Source of the DNA: Trichosphaerium sp. ATCC 40318
Lineage: Eukaryota > Protista > Tubulinea
DNA length: 64,000 bases
Direction of reading: 5' to 3'
NCBI GenBank assembly: GCA_038496445.1
Contig: JALMLS010000637.1
Coordinates: forward strand, 1-64,000
Shown: piece by piece, positions 16,957 through 62,363 of the stretch
Layout of the letters: each line of letters opens with the position of its first letter
Position numbering within the stretch: position 1 is the first letter of the stretch
Notes under the pieces: generated by a model
What the model saw: only the letters and a program-made list of their open reading frames with translations
Told to the model about the DNA's origin: nothing
Database searches by the model: none
Program-made: the position numbers and the translations under genes

Positions 16957-19316
16957 TTAAAGAAAATATGAGATGGGGAAAAAAAAAAAAACCAAAAACT
17001 TACCTTGTAGTGTTAGAATTCCGCGGTCCTGGAAATATCGCGGAGTTCACTCCTACTACTGTTGTAGGTGAAATAGGGTGCTGCGGTTCATTTGGGCGTG
17101 GTTTCGTCTAATTTCATGAATTACTAAGAGCGCTAGATGCCTGTCTATATAAAACGTCAGTAGGTGATGTGAAAAAAAAAGTGTAAAAGTTGTTTGACTG
17201 TTACTTACCTTAAACCACTTCCTTAATGTGATCAGTCCTATGATATAGTATAGACAATGCCTTATATATGGATTAAAATACAAGGCATATAATGCTTAAA
17301 AAAATAAGGCATAATAAAGGCATAAAGTACTTGCAATACAGAGCATTACTTGATTTTATGCAATGCCAAAAAATGCAATACAAGGCATTACCTGATTTTA
17401 TGCAATGCCAAAAGATGCCCAAAAATGCCTGATTTTAATGCCTTTTTGATGAAAGCATTGCCTTTTTGTAAAAATGCCTTACTCTATTGGGCAATGCCAA
17501 ATGCAAATGCCTTGATTTTGCCATCAGATGCCAAATGTTAGGAATATGCATCATTTTTTAAGGCAATGCCTAGCTGAGTTTCAGCCCTGACGTCCTCACA
17601 CTAAAAAACAATTATGTTTGTTTTTAGGGCTGGCAAATTATTACAGCTGTTTTGTTAAAGAGCTTGCAACAATTGCAGCACTGTTGCACATTTTGATTAA
17701 GAAAAACACTGTGTTCAGGTGGTCCAATTTACAACAGGACGTCTTTGAAAAATTAAAGATTGCTCTAGTTAATGCGCCTGTGCTGGTGTATCCTGACTTT
17801 AACAGACTCTTTGAGTTACACACTGATGCCAGTAACTATGGTATTGGTGCAGCTCTTGTGCAGAAAGATGACGAGAGAGATGAACAGGTTATAGCATATT
17901 ATTCAAGAGCGCTATTTCCCACAGAACAAAGGTACCACACTTTTTTGCAAGAGGCGCTTGCTGTAGTAGCAGCTTGCCACAAATTTCATGTTTACCTTTT
18001 ATATAAACCTTTTGAAATTATACAGACCACAAAGCGTTATTACAATTTACTAAAACTTCTAATCCTGACGCTAAATGTGTCAGATGGTCTATTTATCTCT
18101 GAATTTGATTTTACTATTCATCATCACTTTAAATTCTGACAGTGATGTGTTGTCTTGGCAACCTATTGTTAGTATGCATATGTTAATGTTTTTTCTTCAC
18201 AAACTAAATACAAAACAATTCCGGATACGCTTTATGTGTTACTTTTATCAACAACATTTGGATCCAGACCTTTCTAAACTCATTTATTTTTTACAAAATC
18301 CTACAGCTTTTGAAAAATATGATAACTTTTCTAAATTAAAAGCTGCTACTAAATTCTTACATCTTGATGAATTCAGCATTCTTTGTAAAAATAGGAAACC
18401 ACAAGTGCATGAAGAAAATGTGCCTCAAACTACTTTGGTGGTTCCTAAAGATCTTATCCCTGAGGTCCTTGAGCAACATCACAACACGCCTACGGCAGGT
18501 CATCTTGGCTTTAATTGTACCTATAAAGCTGTTAGATGTTGTTTTTGGTGGAAAGGCATGGTAAATTATTTTTCGCGGTATGCTATTGCAGTACCAATTC
18601 GAAATAAGAAAAGTAAAACAGTAGCACATGCAATTTACAAAAACTTAATTTCAATTTATGGTGCTACTGAAAATTTTATTTCTGATAGAGGTGGAGAGTT
18701 TGAAGGTGTTGTTGATGAGTTAGCAAAATTGGTAAATGTTGAACAACGATGTATCGTAGCTTATCATCCACAAGCCAACGGCTTAGTTGAACATTTTAAT
18801 CACATCCTTTCTCAAATGTTAAAAATGTTTACCAATATGTACCAAACTAATTGGAACAAATTTATTTCTTCTTGTACTTTTGCATATAACACTAGCACAC
18901 AGAACAGTGTCAAACTCCCTTTCATGTTATCTTTGGCAGACCAGCAATCAAGCCATCCAATCAAGCTCTAGGTTTATATCCTAGTTTGCGCCTAAAGGTG
19001 GATGAGTGGGTGAAGCAACTTTCACAATCTAGTAAGAAATCCCACAAACTTGTCAAAGAAGCTAGAAAGAAAGCTCATAAACGTCAAGCAAAACATTTTA
19101 ACAAAAGAAGAAATCATGTCAACTTTAAAACAAGTGACCAAGTCTTGCTCTTAAGGATGCACCCTATCGAATATGAGTTTGCAAAGAAATTTGTACACCA
19201 TCAAGAAGGACCATTTACAGTAGTGAAGAGAGTAAACAATGATTATTGGTTGAAAGATGAAGATGGCATTTCTTTTGATACACCATTTCATGTTGAAAGA
19301 CTCAAAAAGTACAAGA

Positions 19317-58059: not shown

Positions 58060-58806
58060 CTAATGACAACCGTTTATAGCGTCATATGTTTGAGTATCGT
58101 CATCTCCTGGTAACTACACATCTTTAGCATCGTTATGTTTAGTCATTGCTTTGTATTCATTATAAGGGCGTAACTATACTCAAACGTAAACTGAGCGCCC
58201 TCACAAAGTAACAATAAAAAAAATGACAAGTTTCTCTTTCGGCCGAATTTCGGCTGAGAATTGGTGGACGAGTTAATGTCAACGTTTTACGTACCCACAA
58301 GTGGAAGAACCAGTAACCAACAGTAAGAGCTACTACTATCGTAATAAACAAGCCAAGGTTATACGTCATTGCGATAAGCATGATTAAATACGATAGAATT
58401 ATCTGTGTTGCGTATACAATCAGTTGGAAGAGCGTAAATAGCGTTCTACGGTCAGAATAGTAGCTTTAAAAAAAAAAGAGTGAGTTTCTTTCGTCGGCTT
58501 CGTTTTTTGTTATTTTGCTTGTTTAGTACCTCGTTTTGCGTTTGCGTTCTCTTGCGAGCTTTTGCGAGAAATAATTCAACGCAACATAGCCAATACAGCT
58601 CAGAAACACCACAAATATGCTATTATAGCGTCAATAGGTAAATTTACGAGATGAAAGTACCTAATGACGTAAATAAGGACACTTTTTACGTCCCAGAAGT
58701 CGAAAAGTATTTTAAAGCCTGTAACGTCTGTATTAAAGGTCATTGGCATCATCATCATCATAGGTTTATGGCCGTGCATTGGAGGCATAGGCATAGTTGT
58801 CTGCAT
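58060..58806 (-). CDS. Ctr-family (SLC31) copper transporter
   Basis: Met/His-rich N-terminus MPMPPMHGHKPMMMMMPMTF, ILFDFW, the MxxxM motif YLIMLIAMTYN, and C-terminal GCH. Confidence 0.92.
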
Positions 58807-59196
58807 TTTGTAAAACTATTGAGGAAAATATTTCTTTCGTTGCTTAGAGTAGGAGTATTCAGGCGAAATGTTATTGGGGCACGATAATTTTTCGGCTTCT
58901 TTGTTTCGCGCATTTATCAAAATCAAGATTTAATGTGCTCACTACCGTTTATTATTACTTCCCACGCGATAACAATAACAAAAAGATCAATACGTACTGA
59001 TTCCAAAATATGATTACCGGCGTATAATTGCCACAAGGTTTGTTACCGGGTTTATCGCTTGTTCCATACGATACACACGTTTCTCACTGAGGTGTTAAGG
59101 TAGTTTAGGCCTTGATATAAGTCTGAGAAAAAAAATAGTAGCTTCACCAATTTTGACTGAATTACGTTTCATCAAACAACATCAAAACTACAAGCG

Positions 59197-61189
59197 ATGG
59201 AACACAAGCAACCACGAAACGAAGAACAGAACTCCTTGCCAGTGTCAAAAGACAATGCCGGAAAGCAAAACAGCGCCAACCAGGTTTCTGCAACCGAAGA
59301 AGGCTCTTTTTGACGTATGTTGGGGTTTATTTAACAGTTAGAACTAATTTGTTTTAGTATCGGCTCCAGGGCCTAAGCCGGTCCTGTCTGAATCTACACT
59401 CGCTGCTATGCCGCATTTAAACATTGTTTTCATCGGTCATGTTGACGCTGGAAAATCTACCTTGTGTGGTAATACTTTGTACCATACAGGTATGGTAGAT
59501 GCGCGTAAAATACAAGAGTGCAAGAATGAGGCGAAAAAGAACAAGATGGAAGGATGGTAAGCGCTTCTAAACAATTTTACTTCAAAATGTTTTTTTTGAA
59601 TGGAAAACGCAAACAAATGCTCATCATTTCGTTAGGTTCGCTGCCTATTTGATGGACACCGATAAGGACGAGCGTGCTAGGGGTAAAACAGTAACTGTAG
59701 CGAGAGCGTGGTTTCACACTGCTAAAAAACGTTACACGATGCTTGATTGTCCAGGTCATCGCAATTATGTCCCTAATCTGGTCCCAGCAGTTGCTCAAGC
59801 AGATGTTGCTGTATTGGTTATATCAGCACGTGGTGATGAGTTCGAGAAAGGTAACTTCAAGCGACAAGTCACTTGTTTTTCTTTGTTGTTGACTTTTTTT
59901 TAAAGGTATTGGAAAGGACAACAATAAGAGCGAACATTCGCATACTGGGCAAACCAGAGAGCATGTTATTATTGCACGTTCTTTGGGTGTATCCCGGTTT
60001 GTTGTTGTGATATCAAAGATGGACGATAGCACTTGTAACTGGGCTGAATCGAGGTACGAGTTTGTTTTTTTTTCTGTTTATTTTTGCGTCTACAAGGCTT
60101 GATGTTATTGACTGACTTTGCCTGTTTAGGTTCAAAAAGATCAAGGATAAGCTATCTACGTTTTTCAAGAGCTTACGTATCTCTAAGAATGCCGTACACT
60201 TCATGCCAATTTCAGGTAATTTTTTGATTTTTTTTTTGATTTTGATGTGTTCTTATTAATCGTTTGTAGGTTTGTCTGGCGCCGGTATCAACCAACCTGT
60301 ACCCGCTAAATGGTACACTGGACCTACTCTATGTGGTCACTTGGATGAACTTCCTGAACTCCGTGATGGTACTGCAAAGGCGCTTTGTTTGCCTGTTCTT
60401 GATATATTCAAAGATCCTGAAGGCAACAGTCAAGTGGTACATATTTGAGTTTTTTGCTCTAGTCTTATTAAACATCGTTCTAGGTCATCACAAAGGTCGA
60501 AGAAGGTACTGCCAATACTGGTGATGTACTGTATATTCACCCAGGACCAGTACGTGCATTTGTTAGATTATATGGCTTCGTTTACTTATATTCTATGTTC
60601 AGGGCACTTGCAAGGTTACCTCACTTTCTATATCAACTCATGCTGTTCCATTGAACAAAGCAAAGCGCGGGGAAAACTTGTGGATGACTGTATCGATCTC
60701 TTCTGGTGCTGATTTGCGTGTTGGATCGGTTTTATCTGACCAAGAAGCTCCAATGGTTTGCAAGGAATTTCTCGCTGAGTGTGGTATTTTTGCGCTTCCA
60801 GATCAAGTATTATTTGCTCCAGGACTTACAGGAATCATGCATATTCATACTGCAACTGTAGGATTTAAAGTAGTGGTAAGACAAAACAAACAAAAACACC
60901 AAGCTCATCTTTTTTTCCGTTTTTCTTTTTATGCTCGACACCTGTTTTTGACACTCTGTCTTAGCGTTTGATGGAAAAGTTTGATCCTTCGAAAGGAGAG
61001 ATGGTCAAGGTTCCAAAAACAAAGCAATTTGTTGGTGTAGGCGTTAAAGTAACATGTATTATTGTTCTTGATTCCAAAGTGGCTGCCACCACTTTTAAGC
61101 AGTCTTCAAAGCTTGGGCGCTTTGTTATGCGCGGAGGTGGTATGTCTTTTGGATCAGGTAGGATAATTCGCATTAAGCCATCCAACTAA
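59197..61189 (+). CDS. eRF3 (Sup35/GSPT)-like translational GTPase with an in-frame UGA at 59311-59313 (alternative start ATG 59408)
   Basis: HLNIVFIGHVDAGKST, TGMVD, ERARGKTV, LDCPGH, VLVISAR..EFEKG, GQTREH, SKMDD.T.NW, PISG and LGRFVMR. All downstream exons splice in frame. Confidence 0.85.
59311..59386 (+). promoter_or_regulatory. Candidate stop-codon readthrough signal (spliced UGA-CUA plus a downstream GC-rich hairpin)
   Basis: TGA C|gtatgt...ctaat...ttttag|TA TCG gives UGA CUA after splicing. Stem CAGGGCC (59367-59373) pairs with GGTCCTG (59380-59386) and starts 10 nt after the stop in the mRNA. Confidence 0.55.
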
Positions 61190-61575
61190 ATACAAAAAAA
61201 TATGACGCTGCAAGGATAACCACTACAAATACAAAAAATCACGTAATAAACATTTACAATAATTTCCTCCTTGTCATTAATTGTGTAACAGTGTTATGAA
61301 GTATTGACTACTCTTTATGTATCAATACATGAATGAACTTTGACCACAACACATACTTTTGCGCAAGTTTCCCAGTCGCTGGAACGAAAAACATAGTCGG
61401 TGATTGCAATAATTTTTTGTTGTATTTTCGTGGGTTTTCTGCTTGTGAAGTTGTTAAGTACTAATTTGTCCTTAGAAGGGTCTATACAATCACCACTCAA
61501 CAAGCCCTTACATTCTTTGAGGTCAACTGAGTTATTGTACTGAGTGGGTACCGAACTTTGTTTATTTTATTCATA

Positions 61576-62363
61576 ATGCTGACCAGTCCCAATACTATGG
61601 TGTGCGAGGTATCATAATCCTAATATAAGGCGAAGTAGTTAACAACTAATATTAATAGAGATTAACTGCACTATCACGTAATTTCCATCTATTAAACCTA
61701 CCAGTTGAGATCCAGCTAGATATTACAGATTTGGACTCATTTGCATATTTTATATGGCCACTTATGTCGAAACAGGCAGCAATGACCACAAGGTTTGATG
61801 GTGAGATGAAAAAGCATGGAAAATGGGTTCGAAGGTTCAATAAGAAACTTGTAGAGCAAAACTACTGGAAACACGGAGTAAGAGACGGAGAACACAAAGA
61901 ATGGCATTTCAACGGCCAATTGGAGACCCAGTGTAATTACATCAATGGCAAACGAGAAGGAGAATGTAAACAATGGCATTTCACTGGTGAATTATATAGC
62001 CAGTTTAATTACATCAATGACAAACTGGAAGGTGAATACAAGCAATGGCATGACAATGGCCAACTGAGGAAGCGTTTTAATTACGTAAATGGCAAACGAG
62101 AAGGAGAATGCAAACAATGGCATTTCACTGGTGAATTATATAGCCAGTTTAATTACATCAATGACAAACTGGAAGGTGAATACAAACAATGGCATCACAA
62201 TGGCCAATTGTGCGTGCAGTTTAATTACATTAATGGCAAACAAGAAGGAGAATGCAATGTATGGTATGCCAATGGCCAATTGGAGAGCCAGTGTAATTAC
62301 ATCAACGGTAAACAAGAAGGAGAAGGCAAACGCTGGCGTGATAATGGCCAATTAATTGTGTAA
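61576..62363 (+). CDS. F-box-like plus MORN-variant (YwqK-like) repeat protein
   Basis: Exon 1 MLTSPNTMVCE, intron 61609-61658, then LLNLPVEIQLDI (F-box-like) and about 7 24-aa repeats NY.NGK.EGE.KQW..NGQL. Confidence 0.8.

Follow-up and report, generated by a model that had tools for sequence, protein, structure and literature searches.

Feedback through a stop codon is a known theme of release-factor genes, and it takes different forms in different genes. Plant eRF1 is autoregulated by stop-codon readthrough together with nonsense-mediated mRNA decay (NMD; PMC5397192). Bacterial prfB, the RF2 gene, has a +1 frameshift at CUU UGA C (PMC3521657), and the eRF1 of Mimiviridae needs both readthrough of UGAC and a shift at CUUUAG (PMC6582330, PMC3521657); for the mimivirus gene, self-regulation by this route is an inference. 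More generally, UGA-CUA is a high-readthrough motif in fungi and animals (PMC4207609, PMC4359377, PMC12233894), and UGA-CUA(G) gives functional readthrough in MDH1, LDHB and the fungal PGK and GAPDH genes (PMC4207609, PMC4359377). The 64,000-nt stretch of Trichosphaerium sp. ATCC 40318 DNA analysed here (contig JALMLS010000637.1, positions 1 to 64,000; hereafter the window) contains a gene for an eRF3-like GTPase in which an in-frame TGA, placed by splicing in the context UGA-CUA, separates a short upstream open reading frame (ORF) from the GTPase ORF. This architecture is real and unusual. The termination-feedback circuit that it suggests is plausible but unproven, and its likelihood falls slightly short of even. 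No paper on recoding of eRF3, or on its self-regulation linked to an upstream ORF (uORF), was found; recoding of eRF3, if real, would be a new form of the known release-factor theme.

The gene resembles each of these systems in part. As in plant eRF1, the mRNA is that of a termination factor, with a candidate leaky stop that would be read according to the efficiency of termination and with introns downstream of the stop that could couple it to decay. In plant eRF1, however, it is the gene's normal stop that is leaky, with the intron in the 3' untranslated region (3' UTR), whereas here the stop precedes the catalytic ORF, so that readthrough would make the factor and not spare the mRNA. With prfB and the Mimiviridae eRF1 the gene shares an early in-frame UGA that is followed by C and preceded by a U-rich codon (here UUU UGA C), but it differs from them in that the shifted frames are closed, the product is the GTPase partner and not the stop decoder, and a downstream AUG offers a bypass. 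The short motif right after UGA is the same as in MDH1, LDHB, PGK and GAPDH, although in those genes readthrough adds a short C-terminal targeting signal to a complete protein, while here the stop comes before the entire enzyme and the base at +7 is U, not G. The features of the gene are as follows.

59174-59196, plus strand: 5' UTR of the dominant mRNA, 23 nt, without AUG, from the contig ends
59197-59313, plus strand: upstream ORF or candidate N-terminal exon, ATG and 37 codons, then TGA; present in cDNA contigs
59311-59313, plus strand: in-frame TGA, spliced context UUU UGA CUA U; the same in all four runs and on both haplotypes
59315-59357, plus strand: intron 1, 43 nt, GT..AG, phase 1, with GTATGT donor, CTAAT and TTTTAG; joint 59314>59358
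59358-59407, plus strand: linker, which with C 59314 makes 17 open codons from the stop to ATG 59408
59367-59373/59380-59386, plus strand: 7-bp stem with a 6-nt loop and one G-U pair, starting 10 nt after the stop; minimum-free-energy fold
59408-61189, plus strand: eRF3-like GTPase ORF, 442 aa, gene model; TAA at 61187-61189
First exon of the GTPase ORF to 59556, then 59636-59850, 59906-60053 and 60130-60215, plus strand: exon bounds from the gene model and cDNA joints
60270-60436, 60484-60549, 60603-60875 and 60965-61189 (TAA), plus strand: exon bounds, continued, from the gene model and cDNA joints
61190-61260, plus strand: 3' UTR, about 65-70 nt; contigs end at 61253-61260

The RNA evidence for this structure consists of intron-free cDNA contigs from four public runs (X1, X2, X5 and X6) of three samples or studies. 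The contigs represent the dominant forms, and minor start sites or minor splice forms are compatible with them. Their 5' ends lie at 59174 (X6), 59181 (X1) and 59187 (X2). Since a SMART template-switch oligo precedes the 59174 end of the X6 contig, this position is probably the cap site. The 23-nt leader lacks AUG, so ATG 59197 is the first AUG of the dominant mRNA; its context, GCG AUG G, has a purine at -3 and G at +4. In the gene model, eight GT-AG introns of 43-89 nt separate nine exons. The joint 59314>59358 is present in all four runs and each of the seven other joints in at least three of the four, the X2 contigs stopping short of the last joint. The spliced mRNA reads ..GGC TCT TTT TGA C/TA TCG GCT.., where the slash marks the joint, in frame with the GTPase ORF. 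It is the removal of intron 1 that creates the CUA after the stop, the lone C at 59314 lying between the TGA and the intron.

The first-pass annotation, made from the letters alone, had proposed this arrangement. Its ATG 59197, TGA 59311-59313, 43-nt intron and splice motifs are all correct by the sequence and the gene model, and the UUU UGA CUA that it read in frame with the GTPase is confirmed by the cDNA contigs of all four runs. A sense codon at the stop position in RNA, a downstream start and splicing around the TGA were looked for in the contigs: these show no difference at the TGA, begin upstream of it, and keep both the ATG and the TGA. The upstream ORF contains two linked allelic single-nucleotide polymorphisms (SNPs), A>C at 59264 (K>T) and G>C at 59273 (S>T). 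One sample has both alleles, each with the TGA kept, and these are the only differences common to several runs in the mRNA of about 1.6 kb. At 59516, the X6 contig has T instead of G, which changes GAG (Glu37 of the GTPase ORF) to TAG; G stands there in X5, a run of the sample that also gave X6, and in the remaining runs, and the T is probably a mistake of assembly or sequencing. Ahead of 59187, the X2 contig has 28 letters foreign to the window (ATTGGTATTCATTTCTACCCAATTTGGG). Because no AG precedes 59187, this position is not a splice acceptor, and the foreign letters are probably a chimeric contig end.

An in-frame TGA could also mean that UGA is decoded here, as selenocysteine or as a reassigned codon, that the transcript is edited, or that the stop is an artefact of assembly or sequencing. 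The bare presence of the TGA is all that speaks for this explanation, which is very improbable. The recurrence of this TGA in the cDNA contigs of all four runs speaks against both an artefact and editing. A search of the mRNA with its 3' UTR of only about 70 nt gave no selenocysteine insertion sequence (SECIS) and no other Rfam match. The GTPase gene and the adjacent MORN gene use TGG for all of their 15 Trp codons, with no TGA in frame within either ORF, which agrees with the earlier statement that UGA is a normal stop in this organism. A tRNA search of the 64-kb window found no tRNA, hence no suppressor tRNA. After the U-run, the +1 frame closes within 21 codons and the -1 frame within 7, which shuts out frameshifting and leaves readthrough as the one workable route; likewise, no indel in the T-run removes the stop, as had been claimed, both shifted frames closing within 21 codons. 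Two other GT-AG pairs by which the TGA could be spliced out in frame (donor 59242 or 59284, acceptor 59377) were rejected, their sites being poor and unsupported by any contig.

The mature mRNA carries an AUG-initiated ORF that ends before the main AUG, as the definition of a uORF has it. In the simplest case this would be a plain regulatory uORF: the GTPase would be made only from AUG 59408, the uORF (its peptide possibly functional) would throttle translation and might trigger NMD, and the shared frame and the stop context would be coincidences. We consider this explanation unlikely, though far from negligible. The codons of the upstream ORF speak against it. Codon likelihood was scored under a codon table from genes of the window and compared with composition-matched stop-free shuffles. 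The 37 codons after ATG 59197 give z 3.3 (p<=2e-4), and z is 3.2 with a codon table that excludes the GTPase gene and 1.9 with a table from the GTPase gene alone. Genuine 37-codon windows of the GTPase, used as a control, give p 0-0.04. A second control is the neighbouring gene at 58807-59088 on the minus strand, a Met-rich gene in divergent orientation that is Ctr-copper-transporter-like by eye and has no Pfam match. It starts at 59088, where a SMART oligo is found, about 85 nt from the start site of the GTPase gene, and it has its ATG at 58806; its 226-nt 5' UTR contains an intron (58942-58997) and three upstream AUGs, with uORFs of 17, 23 and 51 codons. These three uORFs give z -0.6 to 0.1, while the true coding start of the gene gives z 2.9. 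The upstream ORF of the GTPase gene looks protein-coding, unlike an ordinary uORF. The coding signature is thus found on both sides of the stop in one frame, in the upstream ORF and in the GTPase ORF, the linker alone not being significant. A first AUG with a purine at -3 and G at +4, located 23 nt from the cap, should moreover capture most ribosomes, which also argues against a plain uORF.

The leaky-stop context, both UGA-C and UGA-CUA, is present in the spliced mRNA. The chance of CTA as the trinucleotide after the stop is 0.009, which the plain uORF must accept as a rare event. The chance of a 37-codon open frame is estimated at 0.07-0.18, of a shared frame at 1/3, and of an open 17-codon linker at 0.3-0.6; the shared frame with the open linker, at about 0.1-0.2, again counts against a plain uORF. 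The combined chance of ORF, frame, linker and CTA is small, but these features were picked post hoc. Readthrough covers the coding-like ORF, the shared frame and the context together, whereas a pure uORF must call all three coincidence. No other 51-nt window of the 1587-nt mRNA is as GC-rich as the one just after the stop, which also ranks about 11th of 514 windows in local stability, in the top 2%. The GC-rich stem reported in the first pass exists as a predicted fold, the minimum free energy being -17.1 kcal/mol for 63 nt.

Judged from its sequence, the GTPase appears to be a divergent, paralogue-like member of the eRF3-like proteins and not a canonical eRF3. Pfam recognizes GTP_EFTU on exons 2-4; the match of exon 9 to GTP-eEF1A_C, 26 bits, is below the cut-off of 27, and there is no Pfam D2 match. 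The NCBIfam archaeal EF-1alpha profile aligns along the whole length, with ATG 59408 near profile position 5 and the domain II/III region aligned over positions 272-424. In the comparison with the PDB, exons 2, 3, 4 and 9 match eRF3 best, ahead of HBS1 and eEF1A (for exon 3, 79 bits for eRF3 against 56 bits for aEF1A and HBS1L), while the best match of exon 8 is aEF1A, and weak. The G-domain motifs GHVDAGKS, RGKT, DCPGH and SG are present. In exon 59906-60053, the G4 motif is SKMD instead of the NKMD of the family, and a 9-residue insert (the IGKDNNKSEHSHT region) precedes GQTREH; nucleotide specificity may be altered by these changes. With canonical eRF3 (GSPT1/Sup35) the protein shares a G domain that is closest to eRF3 and, apparently, the three-domain EF1A architecture, but it differs in its low identity (37-41%), its very long branch, SKMD, the 9-residue insert, a domain II/III that is barely recognisable, and the lack of a long N/M domain. 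The best full-length relatives are 35-41% identical, and nothing found exceeds about 41%.

In a tree of 71 rows, none of them named HBS1, the GTPase has the longest branch of all (1.88) and lies within the eRF3 part. There it joins a loose group (SH-aLRT 90, with long-branch attraction possible) of long-branch eRF3-like proteins, all without N-extension: L013 (441 aa), P0056, P0024, P0108, P0135, a metagenomic gene on contig L001 and the Marseilleviridae GTPases, of which L090 and L093 are confirmed as the Brazilian marseillevirus and Noumeavirus 'translation elongation factors'. For Marseillevirus and Lausannevirus, Zinoviev et al. (2019, PMC6582330) showed that such GTPases act as eRF3. The GTPase ORF and the Marseilleviridae proteins are alike in length (about 410-440 residues in the latter), in the absence of an N-extension, in the start (M-S-H-L/I-N against M-P-H-L-N here) and, tentatively, in their place in the same loose group. 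They differ in that identity is about 35%, the viral genes lack both an upstream in-frame ORF and an internal stop, and the gene in the window is cellular, has eight introns and is transcribed. The first-pass description of the gene as eRF3-like is therefore borne out by the best PDB matches, which are to eRF3, but not in the sense of a canonical eRF3, since the protein lies on a very long branch among extension-less GTPases.

A number of observations weigh against readthrough. The most direct is that ATG 59408 sits at the natural start of the extension-less relatives, both Marseillevirus MSHLN and the 441-aa proteins, so that readthrough would probably not be needed for an active core protein. 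This position also favours the plain uORF: AUG 59408 matches the start of the Marseillevirus GTPases (L090 begins MSHLN and L093 MSHIN, the ORF at ATG 59408 MPHLN) and lies within 4 residues of the start of the archaeal EF-1alpha profile, and all relatives in the loose group are without an N-extension. The extension itself is at most 56 residues, reachable only through the stop. No PAM2-like motif is seen in it by eye, and the likeness of the linker to the segments that precede the G domain in canonical eRF3 is not significant. Nor are the codons of the 17-codon linker significantly coding-like (p 0.14), being rare and GC-rich, as a plain uORF would have it. At the stop, the base after CUA is U, so that the G of CUAG is missing, and the stem folds no better than dinucleotide shuffles (z -1.1, 29/200). 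The adjacent gene, with its 226-nt 5' UTR, intron and three upstream AUGs, indicates that uORFs and 5'-UTR introns are ordinary here, again in line with a plain uORF. Both SNPs in the upstream ORF are nonsynonymous. Lastly, searches with the exons as queries gave no orthologue among 1.8 billion representatives, metagenome contigs and viral contigs. The proposal that full-length protein is made only when termination is inefficient was too strong, since ATG 59408 could give the complete core protein without recoding. The circuit as first read is thus supported in part: the upstream ORF is coding-like, but the protein is not a canonical eRF3 and the stem is not significant against shuffles.

The homologue searches were made with single exons. 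Exon 2, against the 1.8 billion representatives, had its best match (69% identity) in a 53-aa fragment of a non-orthologous gene. A word-index search with exon 8 gave no match. Against metagenome contigs, exons 8 and 3 gave only matches at the level of canonical eRF3, whose identity did not exceed 67% for the best-conserved exon and whose full-length scores were about 300 bits; exon 3 had no match in viral contigs. The regions upstream of the extension-less relatives L013, L165, L168, L170 and L001 contain no comparable upstream ORF, and the eRF3- and eEF1A-like genes of IMG/VR viruses have no in-frame stops.

The nonsynonymous SNPs bear on one further explanation, a recent nonsense mutation. 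Exon 1 would once have been coding, a sense codon would have become TGA, the dispensable N-extension would have been lost with the core reinitiated at AUG 59408, and exon 1 would now be starting to decay. Such a history would account for the coding-like ORF and the shared frame without a programmed event. It fits the SNPs, both nonsynonymous, with no allelic SNP in the other 1.4 kb or so (except for the G>T at 59516 seen only in X6), as under relaxed constraint. The loss of an extension would also fit the dispensability of eRF3 N-domains for termination; human eRF3 that lacks its N-terminal 138 residues works in vitro (PMC6582330). A recent nonsense mutation is nevertheless quite unlikely. Both haplotypes carry the TGA, as do the contigs of three studies, and chance would have to account for the UGA-CUA context and the GC-rich patch. 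In addition, one would expect a cost from a first AUG that draws in ribosomes ahead of seven exon junctions, but this AUG has been retained.

Since ATG 59408 is a natural start, the balance of evidence favours a mixed mechanism, in which readthrough gives an N-extended isoform and possibly a termination-sensing input; this preference is a tentative one, a little below an even chance. Translation would mostly begin at the first AUG and end at the UGA. A minority of ribosomes would read through the UGA, with Trp, Cys or Arg inserted, and produce a 498-residue GTPase with a 56-residue, presumably disordered N-extension, and reinitiation or leaky scanning could in addition yield the 442-residue core from AUG 59408. 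When termination is weak, readthrough and output would rise; when it is strong, output would fall and seven exon junctions would be left downstream of the terminating ribosome. Given that the protein belongs to the family of termination GTPases, the outcome would be negative feedback like that of RF2 and plant eRF1. Both the termination feedback and the gating by NMD are conjectures from this layout. If readthrough does depend on termination, the second half of the eukaryotic termination complex would be tunable in the same way as the first, and the first AUG, the short ORF, the UGA-CUA made by splicing and the GC-rich patch would together form a compact natural sensor cassette.

The fragment closest to exon 2 (P0002) led to the metagenome contigs L001-L004 and L172-L174, which carry a second eRF3-like gene with an internal stop.

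L001, 4001-5299 (also on L002-L004, L173 and L174): eRF3-like gene without N-extension, with an in-frame TGA, TGG TGA CTA G(CT), in the G domain

The gene starts MDIREHLN, and its fragment clusters stand on 20 contigs. The TGA occupies the position of Y/F in the ..SW[Y/F]LA..MDTNEEER of canonical eRF3, where a related sequence has W. TGA-CTAG is kept in all variants, which differ in 16 synonymous and 5 nonsynonymous codons distributed over both sides of the stop. The contigs have 30% GC and tightly packed intronless genes (Elp3-like, ankyrin, methyltransferases); on the L001 contig, TGA terminates another gene and is absent in frame from a 592-aa neighbour. Because the P-loop comes before the stop, a start further downstream could not rescue the gene, which probably needs obligatory UGA-CUAG readthrough. 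The possibility that this gene is the orthologue of the one in the window was rejected, because beyond exon 2 the two are 31% identical, against 44% to canonical eRF3. Nevertheless, eRF3-like genes that are read through at UGA-CUA probably exist, and the metagenomic gene provides an independent and cleaner test case. A wider proposal is that eRF3-family GTPases in at least two unrelated lineages are expressed through a UGA-CUA stop that termination must fail to read, as a convergent feedback loop, the second lineage being a compact, perhaps giant-virus, genome with UGA-CUAG in the G domain. We regard this convergence as doubtful, if still worth entertaining; if true, a loop on the GTPase partner would complement the recoded eRF1 genes of giant viruses.

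Two other metagenomic loci were noted in the same searches. On a contig of 25% GC (L171, 1606-2900), an eRF3-like gene with GHVDHGKS is spread over at least three frames and has W at the position of the L001 stop; the broken frames may be those of a pseudogene or long-read indel errors, assembly errors being probable. A PNKP-type ligase, Hen1 and a TnpB-like ORF are among the neighbouring genes; the L171 relative was set aside because of its broken frames. On L041, an otherwise canonical eRF3 fragment has TGA, at 1076, in place of the conserved Trp of ..YLSWALD.., and near-identical loci have no stop; this TGA may be an error, a variant, or the mark of an organism that reads UGA as Trp. Elsewhere in the window, two further features were recorded.

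61731-62363, directly downstream of the GTPase gene: intronless MORN_2-repeat ORF, 210 aa (Pfam E 8e-28)
17591-18971: retroelement ORFs with RNase H-like reverse-transcriptase domains (Pfam RT_RNaseH_2, E 2e-33)

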